Assembly (NCBI GenBank): GCA_965644295.1
Contig: CBFFRP010000108.1
Location: 248,001-312,000 of the forward strand
Source: Paraphysomonas bandaiensis
Taxonomy: Eukaryota > Protista > Chrysophyceae
Direction of reading: 5' to 3'
DNA: 64,000 nucleotides
Position 1 is the first letter of the stretch. The number at the start of each line of letters is the position of its first letter. Below are positions 2,787 through 61,912 of the stretch, piece after piece. The notes beneath the pieces were generated by a model. That model saw nothing but the letters and a program-made list of their open reading frames with translations, did no database searches and had not been told where the DNA came from. The position numbers were made by a program, and so were the translations under genes.

Positions 2787-4505
2787 ATGAAAGGATTTCT
2801 GAATAAAGTACAGCGGCGTGTGAGTGGATCAGGCCCATCGAGTGGTAGTGAGAGTAAAAATGAGAAGCCCTCAACACCCATAACCACAGGTAAAGCCGGT
2901 GCTCGTACAAATGGAATAGAACCTACACCAAAAGCGGATGTTACATTACCAAGACGTGAAAGAAGGTGAGCAATAGAGGGCTGCTTGTTAATGTATGTGT
3001 GATTGTGTGGATAGACGATCTTCTTTTATGAGAGCACAAAAGATGCAAGTTCTTAAGGATCTGGCACTTCTATCAGATACACCCATGCAGAAAAGAGAAG
3101 TAATAATATTTTATTGTGTGTATTTTGGTAAATTTCCTTCTTAGGCATTGTTTAAGCAAAAGCTGCAACTCTGCGGTGTTATCTTTAATTTCGATGATGC
3201 TGAGTCTGACATGCGCGGAAAAGAACTGAAAAGAGAAACCTTATTAGAACTGGCTGAATATGTGAATTCTCCTGTGGGACAAAAAATATTTACAGAGTCG
3301 CTAATGCCAGATGTGGTGGAGATGGTGCGTGTGAATCTCTTTCGTACACTTCCCCCACAGACAGATGACTTTGACCCCGAAGAAGACGAGCCATCTATGG
3401 AGGCTGCATGGCCACATCTACAGGTGCATATTATTATTTTATCATTGGATTAGTAGTGTTGTGTTTTTTCTAGTCTGAGGGATTGTGTTGTACATATAGG
3501 TTGTGTACGAATTCTTCCTCCGGTTTGTGGTAAGTTCAGAGGTTAATGGAAAAGTTGCAAAGCGGTATGTGGATCAGGCATTTATCCGGAACTGGATCGA
3601 GTTGTTTGATGCTGAAGACCCTAGAGAGAGAGATTATGTGAAGACTATTCTACATCGTATGTATGGAAAGTTTATGTCCTATCGTTCATTCATCAGGAAG
3701 ACTATCTCACAAGTGTTTTACCGATACATATACGAGACTGGGAAACACAACGGCATTGGAGAACTATTGGAGATCCTTGGCTCGATAATCAATGGTTTTG
3801 CCATTCCTCTAAAGGTGGAACACTTGCAGTTCCTTGAAAAGGCGCTCATTCCATTACACAAACCCCGTGCCCTGTCAGTGTACCACCCACAGCTCTCGTA
3901 CTGTATATCACAATACGTAGAGAAGGACGCGGAGACTGTCGGTGTCATTGTCACAGGACTGATTAGGTTTTGGCCTTGGAGTTGCTCAAGTAAACAGGTG
4001 CTGCTGCTTAATGAGCTCGAAGAGATCATGGAACTGTGCCGCGGGGAGCAGTTGAACCAGGTTCAGGATCAAATATTTAAACTCCTTGCCACCTGCCTTG
4101 CTAGTGAGCACTTCCAGGTGGTCGAACGAGCCTTATACTTCTGGAACTCAGAGCATCTGTGCGCCAATATACTCGCCCAGAACAAAGCACACATATTCCT
4201 TCCCTACATATTTGGACCGCTCAGTAAAAATGCACAGGGTCATTGGAACCAAACTGTTGAGAGTCTTGCACAGAGTGTTCTGAAGATGTATGTACCATGC
4301 ATACTATCTATAAATTTGATGGTTTGTGTTGAACTCTTTTCTTCACAGGTATATGGAGCTTGATATCAACCTCTACGACCGGTGTGCTCGGGAGAACAAT
4401 GATAAGGAGCGCATAAAGGAATCTCAGCTTGCAGCTTCTAAAAGTAAATGGCAATCCATCATTGAAGCTGCCGCAGAGAAGGGTGTTAAGCCTGACCCCA
4501 ACTAG
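2787..4505 (+). CDS. PPP2R5: Protein phosphatase 2A regulatory subunit B' (B56 family), 5 exons: 2787-2965, 3015-3099, 3145-3423, 3500-4287, 4349-4505
   Basis: B56 motifs VNLFRTLPP, EAAWPHLQVVYEFFLRF, EDPRERDYVKTILHRMYGKF, HNGIGELLEILGSIINGFAIPLK, HFQVVERAL and HWN are present. Four GT-AG introns join the ORF fragments in frame, ending at TAG 4503-4505. Confidence 0.96.
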
Positions 4506-9966: not shown

Positions 9967-10863
9967 CTAAACAATCAACTTTCTCTTCTTGACAATCATC
10001 TCACGCTCCTCAAGGATGGTCTGCTTAATACCCTTGCCCTTGGGGAGGGTAATGTCGCTCGAGTCCTTGGTACCAATGACAAAGACGTTCTCAAGACGAG
10101 TGGAGAAAGAACGACCAGCGGCATCACGAACAGTCACAATGTCGAAAGAACCAGGGTGCTTCTCGACGTGCATGATAGTACCAACGCGACCGGTGTTTCT
10201 ACCCTTAGTGATCATACACATGTTACCGACCTCGAACTTGATGAAGGAAATGACTTTGCCAGTGGCGATGTCAACTTTGACGGTGTCGTTGGTAGTGATG
10301 AGAGGATCAGGGTATCTGATAGTGCGACCGTCATGAGTGACAACAACTGGCACCTTCTTCAGGGTAAGTTCCTGGCGCTTAACACGGCAGAGCTTAAAGG
10401 CCTTCTCCTCATCGCTGATGCGGTGGAGAACGAAGCGACCCTTGGTGTCGAAAATAAGGCGGAACTGGTCCCCAGCCTTGGGAAGCTCGACAACATCCAT
10501 GAATCCAGCAGGAAAGTTGGGATCAGTGCGGGTCTTGCCATCAACCTTGACAAGCTTCTGCATGCAGATCATCTTGGTCTCCTTACCAGTGAGGGCATAC
10601 TTGAGTCTGTTTCTCAATATGAGCATCAGAGGCAAGCACTCTCTCAACTTGTGAGGTCCCTGAGAGGGTCTGGGGGCCTAGTAAATATCTTATTAATTAT
10701 ATCCAGGCTTAGTATACAGAGACTCACCCAGATGCCTTCCATCTTCGAAAGCATCCAGTGCTTTGGCGTATTTAAACGCTTCAAATGCTTCTTGGGTCCA
10801 CGTGCCTATACAAACACCAGTGCATTAAAATATCAATTGCAAAGATATCACCAATTATACCAT
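9967..10863 (-). CDS. RPS4: 40S ribosomal protein S4 (eS4), exons 10863-10861, 10805-10728, 10677-9967
   Basis: Spliced product M|[26 protein letters not shown]|[17 protein letters not shown]...[20 protein letters not shown]...[12 protein letters not shown], with GT-AG introns. Confidence 0.98.
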
Positions 10864-23670: not shown

Positions 23671-25968
23671 TTACATCATGTCACTGTTCTCGCTATCCTG
23701 TGCAGCGACTCTGTTCTCTTCCAACAGGCCGTTGCCTTCAACATCACCCTTAGCGTAGTCCTTGTAGGTAATGTCACCCTTCCAGTACTTCTCGTAACAG
23801 TACCAGGTGATGATGAGACCAATGATAACAGGGATGAAGCCATAGTAAAAGTGGTCCCAGTCATCATTACCAGCGATAAGAGGAGCTACAGTGAGAGAGA
23901 TAATGCTCATGAGTTTAATAAGGATGTTAAGAGCAGGGCCGGAAGTGTCTTTGAAAGGGTCACCGACAGTGTCACCGACAACACAGGCCTTGTGGGTATC
24001 TGTGCCCTTGCCACCGCACGCCTTCTCAATCTCAATGTACTTCTTGGAGTTGTCCCAAGCGCCACCGGCAGTGCTCATCATGATGGCAAGCATAGCACCA
24101 GAGGCGATAGATCCACCTAGAAGACCAGCGAGGCAGCGAGGGCCAACGAGAAAGCCAATAAAGAGAGGGGAAAGGATGGCATAAGCTCCAGGAAGGACCA
24201 TCTCCTGAACAGAGGACACAGTGCAGATCTCCACACAGCGCTCGGAATCAGGCTCAGCGGTGCCCTCCATCAAACCGGGAATAGTGTGGAACTGACGGCG
24301 GACCTCTTCGATGATGGCAGCAGCGGCCTTCCTGACGGAAAGCATGGTCAAAGCGGCAAACAGGTAGGGAAGCATAGCACCAAAGAGCATGCCAGAGAAC
24401 ACAATAGGGTCGCCCATGTTGATTTGGCCCTCAATATCAGCCTGTTTCTCGAAAGCAGAGAGAAGAGAAACAGCAGTGAGGACAGCAGAACCAATAGCAA
24501 ATCCTTTGCCAGTAGCAGCAGTAGTGTTTCCTAGAGCATCCAAAGCGTCAGTGGTGTCACGTACACGCTCATCGAGTTCAGCCATTTCAGCAATGCCACC
24601 AGCATTATCAGCAACAGGTCCGTAGGCATCAGTGGCAAGGGTGACAGCAAGAGTGGAGAGCATACCAACGGCGGCAATAGCAATACCGTACTCGCCAGCA
24701 AGAGCATTACAGCAAATGACAGTAAAGACAATCACAAAGATAGGACCAACGCAAGAGATCATGCCAACACCAAGACCCTGGATGATAACAGTGGCGGGAC
24801 CAGTGAGACCAGCATCGGTGATAGACTTAACTGGCTTGTAAGAGTAAGAGGTGAAGTACTCAGTCAACTCGCCAATAAGAACACCACAGAAAAGACCGAG
24901 GATGATGCATCCAAAGCATCTCCATCCATCAGATTGACGTCCAGGGAACAGACCCCAGCAGATAAAGATGGAGAAAACGATCACAAGGAATGAAGCGGAG
25001 TGGACAGCTTTGTGAAGAGCGTGAAGGAGGTCCTTCTGGGAAGCATCGTCCTTGGTAGACACAAACCAGTATCCAATCCAAGAGGAAAGCACGCCAGCAC
25101 CAGCCAACCAGAATGGAAGAGCCATAAGAGCAACGTCACCCTCAGCAAGAGTCACAGTCGCAATGATAGATCCAACAAAGGATTCGAAAAGGTCAGCACC
25201 CATACCAGCAACATCACCAACGTTGTCTCCGACATTATCGGCGATGACAGCGGGGTTACGGGGGTCATCCTCAGGAATGCCCTGTTCAACTTTACCAACA
25301 AGATCGGCACCAACATCGGCAGCCTTGGTGTAGATGCCACCAGTGACACGGGCAAAGAGAGCAATAGAAGAGGCACCAAATCCGAATCCAGCGAGAGACT
25401 CAGCCGCCCATTGGTATTTGACAGCTCTGTCGGGATAAGAGGCGGCGTCTTCGGAACTGATATCATCAGAATCCCGTCCGTAGCTCATGAGGATGAGGAA
25501 GATAGACACACCGAAGAGACCGAGGCCAACAACACAGAATCCCATGACGGCACCTCCAGAGAATGCAACACGGAGGGCAGCATTGAGTCCCAGCTTATCA
25601 GCAGCATGGGTTGTACGAGTATTTGCGTCGGTTGCGACAACCATACCGACCCAACCAGCAGTAGCAGACAAGAGGGCGCCAGCAATGAAGCACCCAGCAA
25701 CTCTGATACCGTCGGTGTCATCAGTGCGAGTGGAAGAAACAGAAAACATCAAGAGGAGGATAGCAGCAACACACAAAACAAAACCAGTGAGGTACTTGTA
25801 TTCGGTAATAAGAAAAGAGCGAGATCCAGCAGCAATAGAGTCAGAAAGCTTCTGCATTTTCTCACTGCCTCTATCGTATCCCTTAAGCTTCTGTGTAAGG
25901 TACACACACATTACGATAGAGATGGCGGCACCAACGAGAGAAAGAGCGACAATCTCGTCGACTCCCAT
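23671..25968 (-). CDS. Membrane-bound cation-translocating pyrophosphatase, K+-dependent type
   Basis: 765 aa with many TM helices. Motifs [84 protein letters not shown] and [18 protein letters not shown] probable 5' UTR intron lies at about 25974-26037. Confidence 0.98.
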
Positions 25969-26516
25969 GTTGCCTGCACCACATCATTGAACGATAAAGT
26001 TAGCAATCAATGAAACAGTGTGTATATATGCACATACAGGGGAAAGTATCATAGTTTTCCTTGGAGCAGAAATCCGACTTGGAATCACCAAGTCCATCCA
26101 GGGTGTAGGTCATTGTTCAATAGTCGATGTCAAAACCAGCTGTTTCCGCAATGCAACAATTGTTTGTGACAACCCAAACAAATGGTATATATGGTTGCAA
26201 TAGATTGTTGATTTTGTCAGGTGATAGAGAGCAGAGCCACAAGATTCAAATCAATTGCGAATGTGTGGTTGCAATATGGCGATAGCATCTTTAATAGACA
26301 CTTTTTTCAGTTTGGTAGTTGTGTTGTTTAGTAACAGCTCGACTGTGTGTGTTTGGGTCGAGGGTCCAATCTATGGACATGTAGGGATAGAAATACCGCT
26401 CCAGACTACAGCAGTGTGATGTGGAGTCAGTTGAGTGAAAAATACAGAGGAATACAGCACTATACGAGATGGGAATACATTATATAGTTATCCTATTGCA
26501 AAGTGCTGCATATGGT

Positions 26517-34925: not shown

Positions 34926-37625
34926 ATGCAAACCTCTGCACTGCATATGATTCGACACACCTCATGCTATATATGCATATATCTTCTCTCTTGTACCATT
35001 TTCATATCTGGCGATACGACTCCTCCGCCTCGCTTTAATCTTGCAGCGCAGGTGCCGTTACTTGTGGAGGATGGTGAACCAGTCACTTCAAGTCTTACCA
35101 TTCAGCAGGCAATACTTATGGCTGTAAATGAAATCAATAATAAGACGGATGGTGTTGCTGATGATTTACTTCCTCAGACTCATTTGTATATCACCATACG
35201 TTCAGTTGGTGCTTCATTTGAGGATGGTGTCAGTGCGACAGTTGAGCAAGTGTCGGCTTTTGGAGAAAATGAGACAGTTGTAGCATGCATCGGTCCATCT
35301 AATTTCGAGACATACAAAGGTGGGTCCTCGATTTTTTTGAACCATCACGTAGCCCAAGTTGGCTACCATGCTAGAGACTCAGCAGTAGGGATGTCGGATC
35401 TATATCCCAATTCTCTCCGCACTGTACCAGGACATTACGTCGCAGGATACATTATAGCGGACTTTGTTTCCCATCAACGCTGGAAACGAGTTTCACTCTT
35501 TTCTACTTCAGATACATTTGGCAATATAGCGTCCTTCTTTTTTGCGAAGGAAGCAAGAAAGCATGGTGTGACCATCTTAACACAGCACAAAATATCGAAG
35601 TACACGAAAGACTACTCCTCTCATATTCTCCGTGCGAAACGGTCGGGGGCAAAAATTTTTGTTCTATTAATGTCATCTGAATCCGCTGCAAAGTTGTTAA
35701 GTCAGGCTTATTTACTGGGGCTCTTTAATTCGGACACCGTAATCATTGGCAATGAAGAAATATCGAGTTTAACAACATGGGCACGACTTAATCCTGAGTT
35801 ACCATCTCTTGTGACGGGGTTTATTAGTTTTAAATACCATGAACATCCAGAACTGAGTAAAGAAAAGACTGAATTTATTCAGCGCTTTCGCAGTCAGTCA
35901 CACACACTAGGTAGAACTGAGAATAGTTCAGAAGTGTGCGACAACTCAACGGATGCCACAGGCAATTATTTATACCGCGTTGATTACTATGAGGATCATG
36001 GAAGTGTCAGTACCTGCGTTGGCTTAAATCATTCCTTATTTGTAGAGGATGGAAGTGATCTACATCCTGCAGTATATCACGCTTATGATGCTACCTACGC
36101 CATCGCAAATGGCCTGCATCGTTTGGTGTATGAAAAGGGGAATTACTTGGTAAATGATGACGGTCTTACTGAGGAGCTTCTATATGGAGTACATTTCCCA
36201 GGTGTTTCTGGTGAGGTAACGTTCTCCACACAATATGAAGAAGCTGGCCTTGACGTGGGGGGGCGGAGTACTGGGTTCACTTTTGATATTCTCAATTATG
36301 ACAGCTCGTTTTCCTCAGCTGAATTTGTTTTAATTGGCAAATATCACAGTGAAACTGGGGTCACTTTCTGTGAAAATTGTCGAATAACATATGCTGGCAG
36401 CGAAAAGAAACCTTTGGATAGAGCTGAGGCGAAAGTTGTGCATCTGAACTCTTTCAAGTTTGCTGTCGCGATGGCTTTCTCGCTTATGGCTGTATTATTC
36501 GTCATATTTTACTTGCTCATATTTGTTGTGTACAAAGAGACTCGCTTAATAAAAGCAGCACAACCATTGGTATGTTACACTATCCTGTTTGGGTGTTGTT
36601 TAGGTTGTATTCGATCAATCGCGGCAACTGTAAATCCGACAGTGGGTCTTTGTATATTGCAATTGTGGCTGTCACACATGTCATTCGCTATTGTATTTTC
36701 TGGTATGCTTGTGAAGCTCTGGAAAGTGCACAAGGTTATGTACTCGTCATTTAAACGGATAAAGCTGTCACGCATTGCTACTGTGCGGTTAATTCTCCTA
36801 TGCACGCTCCCTGTGTGCATTTATCTGTTTTTCATTTCTTTACTCGGCGGAGTAGAAGTTATCGATGTTTTGGTTCGGGAGAATCAGCATAGTATTGTGT
36901 ATCAACAGCAATGTGAATTTGAATTACGCACTGAATTGTACGGGCTGTATGCTATCGAACTGATGTCCGTGTTGTGTGGTTTATATCTTTGCTACCTCGT
37001 TAAAGATATCCCTGAAAGCTTATCGCATTATATTGCTCTGAGCAAAAGTAAGTTTTTTCATTGAAAACTTTATGTATGTCATACATTTAATGCAGGTATC
37101 ACATGCGTTACGTTTTTGTCTTCAGTGTGTTTCTTCGTAATATACTCGTTTCAGCTCGACCCGAATAGCGCCCAATGCTTGGTATCTGTTGCATTTTCTT
37201 TATGTATTATTACCATACTTGATTATTTATTCCGAAGTACTTGTGTCAATTTGCTCTTGGGGAAGGACATTTCAAATTCCTTCCTAGTTAAAAAAGGAAT
37301 GCATAAAAGTGTTTTGGAAGTTTGGAATGGGGTACCTATTAGCCCAGAAGAAGATGAGAACTATTGTGCATCTCCCAGTACGAATATCGTGAATAACTGG
37401 AATTTGAAAACGATTCCAAGGGATGTTGTTGAAGTAGCAGAGAGGAAAAAGGAAATCCATAATGTTATGGATGCATTGCGACAAGAGTTATCTCAATTGG
37501 TCGCCTCAGAAATATACTCTGATTCAGACTATGTTTCAGATATGTCTGTACTATCTCAGGCTCCGCGTTCTCGGAATAGTAGTCCAACAGTTTCGGTACC
37601 TTCGTATGTTCAACGTTTTTCCTGA
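34926..37625 (+). CDS. Class C GPCR (GABA-B-like): Venus-flytrap domain plus 7TM, one intron at about 37048-37095
   Basis: Signal peptide, AVNEIN, YPNSLRTVP, WKRVSLF, HAYDATYAIA and FPGVSGEVTF, followed by 7TM motifs IKAAQPLVCYTILFG, MLVKLWKVHKV and VKDIPE. Confidence 0.9.
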
Positions 37626-59315: not shown

Positions 59316-61912
59316 ATGATGAACAGAGAGGACGTACCTGCTGCTGCTAGTGATGATAGTATACTATTGGGGAGAACGGAGCTAATATCTATGCGTGAAA
59401 TATTCCCTGATGAAACAGACTCCACTCTACTGAACTGTCTGCAGAACACTAATTGGAATCTTGATTCTGCAGTTCTACTGTGCTTAGAGCAACAGTCATC
59501 CTCATTTATCACACGCACACTGCCAAAGTCTCAGTCGTCTAGTAGTGTGGGATCTCTGCTTACAGATGAGGCAAGTCAGTCCCCTTCAACGAACCCGATG
59601 CGTATGCAGCAGCAGGGAGGGTTGAATAGCCGATCCCCTATACGCCGCTCAGGTCCACGACGAGTGGCTGCGCGTATGACTCTGCCAAATGACTTCATTT
59701 GTGTCCCAAGTGTACGCACAGTAATTGACTCCACATTTCCTATACACAAGGCCGATAGCATAGACTTCACGGTATACATTAATCGCTCTGGTGCATCCCT
59801 TGGTCTCAATGTCGAGAAACAAGGTGGGAATATCGTGGTGAGCGGATTGAGTAATGAATCCTCCAATACCCCAGGACTCTCTTACCAAGCAGGAGTTCGA
59901 GTCGGTGATGTACTTCATGGCGTAAACTTTGAATACTTCAATACTGGTGTTTCTAAAGCTAATGTTACCAAAGTAGTATCAGCTGCTGGACCGTTCCTCT
60001 GTCTTCATTTTATTCGCTATCTAGATGTAAGCAGGACTCCCTATACGGATGGTAGCACGCGACAACACGCTGCATCTCTGCGCAAAATTCATCCCTGTGC
60101 CTTGATGTTGTTAGACCAAGAAGTGCTTGATGTGGAGGACATGGAGGTCTTTTGTGAATCTTTGCAAAGACTAAAATCCCGAACCATAGACTGGAGCACT
60201 GGGGTTATACGACAACGAACGAAAATTAGAGACATTGCTGCTGCAATACAGTCTTCTGGTTTGGGTGCAGTGGATGGGACTGGGACGCGAGACGACTCTG
60301 CACTTCGACTGGTGTCTAGCAGTAGTGGCGGTAGTTCGTTGCGCAATATGCGCTGGCCTGTAACCGGGTCCACTGCTCCTATGGCGCTATCTGCGTATAG
60401 ATCTAGCGGGGAAATATCTGACATTCGGCAAAGTTGGTATAAGGAGGTTACTATGAGTACTCGAGACATCCAACCGGCGATATCTATCCGTATAACTGGG
60501 ACCACGGTGATTGATGATCACACGGAGTATGTACTATGGGTGCAAGACGTGAGCACCGGGTTACAGTGGTATACCACCAGAAGATTTAGGGAGTTCTTTA
60601 AGCTCAGAGAGGTAAGCATAGCGTGAAACAACATCTATCTGTTTCATATCGCAATTGGTAGACTCTAGTTTCACTTTGGGGTGTCTTCGGATCGCTTCCT
60701 TTCCCTGCTCGACGCCTCTCTGTTGGACGAAATGACCCATCAGGCTCCCTGGTAGCGGAGCGCCGTCCTTTGTTGGAGACATTCCTGCGGTCTGCGTACC
60801 AGGTAGTTGTCGCTGAGCACCTGGTCCATCCCGCGACGAGAAAAATATTCTTAGCGATATATCGCTTTGTAGATGTATCTCACAATATGCCATCAATCTC
60901 TGCTATATACTCGCAGCAAAAGAGGCTGCATGACGCGTACATCGAGAGACTGATGGAGGAGCATGCCTATGTAGGTGCCTCTCATCGCGATGACGAAGAA
61001 TGTACCATAGACTATTTAAACGATCCATTCATTTTTGTGCGCCGATGGGTGGAGATCTACATTCACTCTATACTTCAGTTGCCGGTGTTTCGTAGGGTAG
61101 TGGGGAGATTCGTTCGCAATTATCTGAAGAGTAGTACAGGCGATGACTCGAAGTCGTGGGATGAGCGAGAATCTGTGAATAACGTCAAGTCTTTAGGTGA
61201 ATTTATTGATAACCTCCAAGATGTACTATTAAGAGGCATGCGTACTGACGTTGCGGAAGTAATTGAACACTTTGTCCATGGTGACACTCGGGGAAGGTAT
61301 GGGGGCCAGCCCAGACAGCTACAGAAAATAGATGAAGATACCATCTATGTAAATGCGATTTTGAAGATGGACTGGGTGGATAGTATTACACAGGTAGCTG
61401 TTAGGCGGCAGATCGAGACAGAGGTATACGTACCATGTGCGGATGCCGTGAGAGCAGTACTTAATGAGGGGTTCGCTCAGAGGGACAAACAGTTAGTTGC
61501 CAAGTGCCAGTATCTGAGGTGCCAGCCTCAGTCGTTTTTTGGCATACCCCTGAAGCATATTTCTCCCTCTAGCTGGGAAGATGTCGTCCGTGCTATAGAT
61601 AAAGTGCCTAAGATGTCCATCCCTTTTGACAAATTACAACTGCTCGTTGCGGCTGCAAAGCAAATTCCTGAGATCTACCGTAAAGAGCATCCAGATGCAT
61701 CCATTTCCCTAGGAGCCGATGATATGCTCCCAATATTTATATATTGTTTAGCTATGTCCAAAATTAGACGGCTCTCCACTCTCTCGAAGGAACTGGAGAA
61801 TGTATGTGACTCCGAGTGTAGGGTGTCAGAGATAGGCTACTATACAGCAACTTTAGAGGCATCACTTCAGCATATACTAGACATGGATGAAATCAATGGC
61901 GATATTAGTTAG
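59316..61912 (+). CDS. VPS9-domain Rab5 GEF with N-terminal CUE/UBA-like, PDZ and PX domains; intron 60612-60661
   Basis: MREIFPD...NWNLDSAV (CUE-like); SLGLNV...AGVRVGDVLHGVN (PDZ); HTEYV...RRFREFFKLRE|...LPFP...ERRPLLETFL (PX); LGADDMLPIFIYCL...EIGYYTATLEASL (VPS9). Confidence 0.88.

Follow-up and report, generated by a model that had tools for sequence, protein, structure and literature searches.

The window, that is, the whole 64-kb stretch of DNA analysed here, carries on its minus strand a spliced and expressed nuclear gene for a K+-dependent membrane pyrophosphatase (M-PPase), whose gate residues are those of Na+-pumping enzymes and are strictly conserved among its eukaryotic relatives. 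The protein has the M-PPase fold and stands apart from the H+-PPases that carry the gate glutamate at position 6.57. The ion that it transports, the membrane in which it sits and its physiological role are what we infer from these features. From the sequence comparisons taken together, Na+ transport, with dual Na+/H+ transport counted in, would be the best reading and in our opinion a probable one. That the enzyme "may pump Na+", as the original prediction had put it, seems to us the right strength of claim, and all those parts of it that are open to an in-silico check were borne out.

Gene structure, expression and genomic setting

The gene had been placed at 23671-25968. The uninterrupted minus-strand frame of 765 codons (765 aa) listed there among the open reading frames of the window was confirmed to the base as M-PPase coding sequence; it proved, at the same time, to be exon 2 of a two-exon gene and not the whole gene. 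Transcript proteins possess 27-32 extra N-terminal residues beyond the genomic ORF, and the counterpart of this extension is located 64 nt upstream in the window. The spliced product has 792 aa, of which 27 N-terminal ones are added by exon 1. The features of the gene are listed below; gate residues are numbered in the 765-aa ORF, helix 17 and the tail in P0122, the corresponding transcript protein.

26038..26113, minus strand: exon 1, 76 nt, with the start codon, 25 codons and 1 nt; the first 26 residues of P0122 are exactly this frame
25974..26037, minus strand: 64-nt spliceosomal intron with GTATGT donor, CTAAC branch-like site and CAG acceptor; its splicing gives P0122 exactly
23671..25973, minus strand: exon 2, coding for the remainder of the M-PPase and containing the stop codon; the 765-aa core is P0122 residues 28-792
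25168..25206, minus strand: helix 6 gate motif, 13 residues (255-267), with D6.50 at 259, E6.53 at 262 (codon 25183-25185), S6.54 at 263 and G6.57 at 266, by alignment to the Vigna radiata enzyme (VrPPase)
24514..24531, minus strand: K+-dependence signature GNTTAA, residues 480-485, with A12.46 at 484 (codon 24517-24519); G12.49 is residue 487
23914..23928, minus strand: helix 16 gate residues, N16.46 at 681 and K16.50 at 685
23782..23850, minus strand: extra, 17th transmembrane helix, eukaryote-specific, P0122 residues 734-756, seen as an AF2 helix and a hydropathy peak
23674..23781, minus strand: variable, acidic C-terminal tail containing YKDY and EGNGLL; pLDDT below 50 at residues 767-792

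The 792-aa product is 100% identical to P0122, a transcript protein of MMETSP1103 (taxid 36769, Paraphysomonas, a colourless chrysophyte), which is also the nearest database protein. It follows from this exact match that the gene is spliced and expressed, and from the residue-for-residue agreement that the genome belongs to the MMETSP1103 strain or a very near one. The fold model and the alignments were made with P0122, which equals the product after splicing, and expression rests on the same transcript identity. The codon usage had been described as similar to that of ribosomal protein genes, with high expression suggested. The gene has an ENC of 40.6 with only 8% of A-ending codons, and its RSCU correlates with that of RPS4e (9970-10677, minus strand) at r 0.80, which confirms the similarity; seven other reading frames tested in the window give r of -0.18 to 0.12 with RPS4e and of -0.01 to 0.24 with the M-PPase gene. 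The codon bias and the exactly matching transcript together support the suggestion of high expression.

The closest non-eukaryotic relatives of the protein are bacterial (48-57% identity), and one could think of bacterial contamination or a very recent transfer instead of a resident eukaryotic gene. We regard this as next to impossible, being already refuted by the spliceosomal intron and by the position in the middle of the 64-kb window among eukaryotic genes (RPS4e, PP2A-B56, an M20 peptidase, a class-C GPCR and a VPS9 protein). The codon usage matching that of the host RPS4e, the paralogues on other contigs and a deep eukaryote-only clade that spans chrysophytes, diatoms, bolidophytes and others argue against it as well. 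The intron and the neighbours also bear out the initial description of the protein as a eukaryotic M-PPase, and the gene is nuclear.

Fold, gate residues and eukaryotic additions

The ORF matches Pfam PF03030 (H_PPase) with 849 bits against a cut-off of 29.7 over residues 16-693, and its sequence matches in the PDB are membrane pyrophosphatases only: the Vigna radiata H+-PPase (553 bits), the Thermotoga maritima Na+-PPase (511) and the Pyrobaculum K+-independent H+-PPase (432). The AF2 model of P0122 (pLDDT 87.4, pTM 0.88) likewise finds only M-PPases by Foldseek in the PDB, with a TM-score of 0.83 to Vigna and 0.81 to Thermotoga, a comparison that does not separate Na+ pumps from H+ pumps. 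The catalytic Asp/Lys motifs are in place, the invariant columns of our 42-row alignment A1 including an 18-residue and a 10-residue motif, and an Atlas search returned generic M-PPase clusters only. Database names are of little help with the ion. The protein passes TIGR01104 V_PPase ("V-type H+") with 769 bits against a cut-off of 652, which could be read in favour of a H+ pump, and it passes the cut-off of NF001960 ("sodium-translocating") too; neither name carries ion-specificity information, as both models also pass in the Caulobacter, Bacteroides, Thermotoga and Methanosarcina control genomes. Some members of the clade are automatically labelled in databases as "K(+)-stimulated pyrophosphate-energized sodium pump".

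Two motifs had been singled out in the original prediction at approximate positions: GNTTAA, with Ala at the K+-dependence position, and a helix 6 motif with Glu one helical turn earlier than in the plant H+-PPase. Both are found with the exact coordinates given above. The change between A12.46 and K12.46 is the switch of K+-dependence (PMC6882861), and in the window protein GNTTAATG, residues 480-487, has Ala and not Lys at 12.46 and Gly and not Thr at 12.49. This assigns it to the K+-dependent subfamily and away from the K+-independent H+-PPases; the K+-independent relatives in the same comparison set have K at 12.46 and T at 12.49. In the HMMER alignment to the Vigna radiata H+-PPase (4a01) the helix 6 motif stands opposite Vigna GMGSDLFGSYAES, which gives E6.53 and G6.57, so that the Glu at 6.57 typical for plant-type K+-dependent H+-PPases is Gly here.

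In TmPPase, the Thermotoga enzyme, Na+ is bound by D6.50, E6.53, S6.54 and D16.46, with K16.50 swinging away, and the shift of Glu to 6.57 has been proposed to destroy the Na+ site (PMC5150537). The window protein has D6.50, E6.53, S6.54, Asn at the D/N16.46 position and K16.50, in agreement with the predicted residue pattern of Na+-pumping enzymes. These five together with S5.43 (residue 200), G6.57, A12.46 and G12.49 are identical in 129/129 full-length eukaryotic relatives from the first protein search (65-97% identity; diatoms, bolidophytes, chrysophytes and many marine metagenome and transcriptome clusters), are shared by 18 of the 21 K+-dependent bacterial relatives of the set, and do not vary in alignment A1. 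Such invariance of a complete Na+-site set across more than 129 relatives speaks against a H+ pump. Most characterised enzymes with E6.53 and A12.46 transport Na+, which points in the same direction.

With the K+-dependent Na+-PPase of Thermotoga (4AV3, 5LZQ) it shares the 16-helix fold, A12.46 and the D6.50/E6.53/S6.54/K16.50 gate at 39-40% identity, and adds to these a C-terminal helix 17, a Cys-containing N-terminal extension and a eukaryotic spliced gene. With the vacuolar H+-PPase of Vigna (4A01) it shares the fold, K+-dependence, N16.46 and K16.50 at 43% identity, but the Glu is at 6.57 there and at 6.53 here, and the two fall into different clades (AU p 0.007). At position 16.46 the protein agrees with Vigna (Asn) and differs from Thermotoga (Asp), an observation that counts against a Na+ specificity; Asn is the norm at this position in the bacterial E6.53 set.

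The motif narrows the options without settling the ion, because E6.53 is also found in a K+-dependent H+-PPase and in dual pumps, and the gate residues alone do not fix ion specificity; the reverse mutation, too, does not produce a Na+ pump. Published tables list K+-dependent H+-PPases with Glu at 5.43, 6.53 or 6.57, Carboxydothermus being the one for 6.53 (PMC6882861 Table 1; PMC5150537). The window protein might then be a K+-dependent H+ pump that retains E6.53, similar to that of Carboxydothermus hydrogenoformans, and would acidify a vacuole, an acidocalcisome or a food vacuole. Its slightly higher score against Vigna than against Thermotoga fits with this, as does the fact that the eukaryotic M-PPases characterised so far all pump H+, Na+-PPases still being described as a prokaryotic subfamily (PMC9405524). 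Weighed with the conserved Na+ site and with the paralogues and trees discussed below, we find such a H+ pump unlikely, though by no means far-fetched.

The additions of the eukaryotic family are found at both ends of the protein. In every eukaryotic member helix 16 is succeeded by a further, hydrophobic helix, the 17th, and this in turn by an acidic tail of variable sequence; in the prokaryotic relatives and the E6.57 paralogue the chain stops directly behind helix 16, and the 17th helix is absent in all of them. In P0122 the AF2 helix at 734-756 has a block pLDDT of 87-92 and coincides with a hydropathy peak at 734-752. In canonical M-PPases both termini are on the non-cytosolic side. If helix 17 spans the membrane, the tail would be cytosolic and could, as a speculation on the model, carry sorting signals; this sorting role is only a guess, since YKDY and EGNGLL are not conserved beyond close relatives. 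The N-terminal extension, kept across the eukaryotic clade, bears two conserved Cys (motif ..DFCS..FPC), which would face the lumen or the outside. With this extension and the extra helix the eukaryotic family has diverged, and this also counts against reading it as Na+-transporting. The extra helix of the Streptomyces coelicolor H+-PPase is C-terminal too. This bacterial, K+-independent enzyme differs from ours in both respects, and it offers a precedent for more than 16 helices; M-PPases with 15-17 helices are on record in PMC9405524, which cites Mimura 2004.

Paralogues and phylogeny

When the 62.6-Mb assembly was searched for the family in six frames, about eight M-PPase loci came to light, given here by contig.

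C108: the window gene, E6.53
C78: a twin of the window gene, plus a truncated third copy 3 kb away
C451: a two-exon gene, E6.57
C182 and C275: two multi-exon genes with His at 16.46, which look type II
C412: an M-PPase copy with stops
C150: an M-PPase gene with Ser at 6.53

The product of C451 has an exact counterpart among the MMETSP transcript proteins (100% identity). Over 506 aa it reaches 588 bits against VrPPase and 334 against TmPPase, to be compared with 553 and 511 for the window protein. Judged by its sequence, it is a canonical H+-PPase of Vigna type and a true orthologue of the latter. With the canonical H+-PPase already in the genome, the window gene should be something else, and the presence of C451 and of the type-II-like genes weakens the case for a second H+ pump. 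The C78 twin has 97% protein identity to the window gene with only 84% identity of DNA, and the similarity ends at the gene borders; the two are old paralogues under strong purifying selection. A haplotig or contamination as the source of this pair is excluded by the same two figures, the DNA identity and the borders.

The C150 paralogue stands for a subfamily, conserved among eukaryotes, that has no Glu at 5.43, 6.53 or 6.57 and in which 53 clusters have Ser at 6.53 and about 10 have Gly; Andalucia godoyi and Chlorochromonas danica are among its members. No relocated acidic residue was found elsewhere in this subfamily, and its substitutions fall mainly in helix 5 (5.40-5.47) and in helix 16, with Ile to Tyr at 16.54 and Leu to Val at 16.57. 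As the reviews consulted assume that the Glu is always present, the subfamily may be undescribed. A sister that has lost the Glu entirely tells us that the gate is evolvable, which is a further point against a Na+ reading of the window protein.

The trees were built from 80 named prokaryotic loci, 50 more from species genomes and the eukaryotic matches of three protein searches, in three IQ-TREE runs (LG+G4, quick search, SH-aLRT support only) rooted on the K+-independent enzymes, and their topologies agree. Among the sampled sequences the only relative of a characterised enzyme is that of Anaerostipes sp. (L016); Anaerostipes caccae has a characterised Na+-PPase. The window protein falls inside a eukaryotic E6.53 clade (SH-aLRT 99-100). 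Together with two eukaryotes that branch deeper and also have E6.53, Rhodelphis being one, and with the Glu-less clade, it makes up a single eukaryotic 17-helix family (92-98). On the prokaryotic side this family is joined first by E6.53/A12.46 enzymes of the Chloroflexota type (97-99) and next by a Spirochaetota/Poribacteria group (97-98). We know of no characterised enzyme from these nearest groups, that is, the Chloroflexota, Spirochaetota and Poribacteria types. Clostridia, including the Anaerostipes sequence, are more basal and not sister to the eukaryotic family. Outside all these groups stands the E6.57 clade (support 100) with C451, brown algae, xanthophytes and one genome of the spirochaete phylum, which we take to be Leptospira-like.

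In an AU test the union of the 17-helix family and the E6.57 clade into one clade was rejected (lnL difference 52.5, p-AU 0.0068). A grouping with H+-PPases, the outcome against which the original prediction had been set, is thus not what we observe: the protein is nested among bacteria with E6.53 and A12.46, and the test refuses to join it to the E6.57 H+-PPase clade, which tells against a H+ pump as well. The grouping with Na+-PPases would hold only in this sense, as nesting among bacterial enzymes with a Na+-type signature, and it would be logical to derive the eukaryotic family from bacterial ancestors that had the gate of a Na+-PPase (Glu 6.53, Ala 12.46).

Among the enzymes of these nearest bacterial groups are long forms of about 730-760 aa whose N-termini resemble signal sequences, which would be in line with a special case of Na+ transport, namely a dual Na+,H+-PPase transporting Na+ and H+ alike when Na+ is at its physiological level, as does the enzyme of Bacteroides vulgatus. 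Four signature residues of the dual pumps, outside the channel, are said to have been defined by Luoto in 2013. Dual pumps have E6.53 and A12.46 in common with our protein (PMC5150537), and as their distinguishing residues are outside the channel, the gate is compatible with this case; the Bacteroides enzyme, K+-dependent and with E6.53 like the window protein, is Na+-requiring (PMC11593465, PMC5150537). We hold this special case to be distinctly improbable, and count it within the probability of Na+ transport.

Putative Na+ transport and its significance

Na+ transport remains the reading that we favour, owing to the descent from E6.53/A12.46 bacterial enzymes, the absolute conservation of the whole Na+-site set, the separate canonical H+-PPase and the heavy marine representation of the family. 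We propose that the K+-dependent M-PPase would hydrolyse cytosolic PPi and thereby drive the export of Na+ from the cytosol, either through the plasma membrane or into a compartment inside the cell. By analogy with the Thermotoga enzyme, the D6.50/E6.53/S6.54/N16.46 site would hold the Na+ ion, which would then leave past K16.50, and H+ may also be carried at low Na+, like in characterised Na+-PPases. In a marine phagotroph the favoured role of such a pump would be Na+ extrusion or a Na+ motive force, with a saving of ATP.

The core idea of a eukaryotic Na+-PPase had been published before on the strength of in-silico work: Perez-Castineira, Serrano and co-workers proposed in 2020 that marine prasinophytes and diatoms carry putative orthologues of prokaryotic Na+-PPases (PMC7438732). 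The diatoms Cylindrotheca, Seminavis and Nitzschia are in the clade of the window protein with 66-69% identity; the 2020 paper contains neither a gate analysis nor the 17th helix, a chrysophyte member or biochemical validation. To this idea the present analysis adds a precise two-exon gene model proven by a transcript, a quantitative test of codon usage, a description of how the 17-helix family is built, the outcome of the AU test and the finding of three gate types in one genome. The Serrano group has pointed to a possible use of such enzymes in engineering salt tolerance (PMC7438732).

We may even suggest, with the chances for and against being about even, that this is the first family of eukaryotic Na+ pumps powered by PPi: ancient, 17-helix, spread across marine stramenopiles and other protists, of bacterial origin with the Na+ gate intact, and a source of Na+ motive force that needs no ATP. 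The Glu-less sister would then be a further undescribed transport or non-transport variant. If verified, a eukaryotic Na+-PPase would be a primary Na+ pump for abundant marine protists, beside the P-type ATPases, and the E6.53, E6.57 and Glu-less enzymes would offer a natural three-way comparison, in one genome, of how the gate sets the choice of ion.

Surroundings and N-terminus of the window gene

The M-PPase gene of the window is neighboured by eukaryotic genes, among which the ribosomal one has a strong codon bias (GC3 0.63):

3500-4360, +, PP2A B56
9970-10677, -, RPS4e
34926-37061, +, class-C GPCR (ANF receptor and 7tm_3)
60662-61909, +, VPS9-domain protein

The encoded protein starts with an extension that is found across the eukaryotic E6.53 clade:

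26038-26113, -, N-terminal extension with two conserved Cys (..DFCS..FPC..)

This extension would reside on the non-cytosolic side of the membrane, and therefore a disulfide is possible. N-terminal extensions resembling signal peptides occur in bacterial E6.53 relatives from the Poribacteria/Spirochaetota group (loci L030, L099, L102 and L116), whose open frames span 740-800 aa; Clostridial forms are shorter.

Other M-PPase genes of the genome and doubtful hosts

The Paraphysomonas assembly (G000) carries further M-PPase loci, including:

G000:C78:207945-209978 (L002), second full copy of the window gene
C78:204139-205236 (L005), truncated third copy, 3' half only, 3 kb from the full one
G000:C451:18224-20350 (L004/L007), Vigna-type E6.57 H+-PPase gene, two exons

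The full C78 copy, which matches the MMETSP transcript protein P0001 at 99%, has 97% protein but only 84% DNA identity to the window gene, and the similarity stops at the gene borders. The C78 copies are old paralogues under purifying selection. The C451 gene is expressed, its transcript protein P0300 being 100% identical. Contigs C182 and C275 bear one multi-exon gene each, with His at 16.46, and both look like type II; the C412 copy contains in-frame stops and may be a pseudogene.

Database proteins P0054, P0021 and P0160 have doubtful host labels. An incomplete entry named 'Symbiodinium microadriaticum hppA1' shares 88% identity with the chrysophyte protein of the window, a transcript protein of the phagotrophic euglenid Ploeotia vitrea (75% identity) is placed inside its clade, and a Ser-6.53 protein of eukaryotic type occurs in a MAG labelled 'archaeon'. 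The organisms named in these records do not look like the real hosts; contamination, sequences from prey or misbinning seem likelier.

A subfamily without the gate Glu

One more paralogue was found on contig C150:

G000:C150:394998-396770 (L003:1519-3534, + on L003), Glu-less M-PPase

Having Ser at 6.53 and 5.43 and Gly at 6.57, it is devoid of the semi-conserved gate Glu. Its subfamily, conserved in eukaryotes (Andalucia godoyi and Chlorochromonas danica among the members), has Ser at 6.53 in 53 clusters and Gly in about 10. No acidic residue moved elsewhere was found in the subfamily, and the gate surroundings in helices 5 and 16 are remodelled. Within the eukaryote-only 17-helix family it is the sister of the window's clade, and it may represent an undescribed type of M-PPase.
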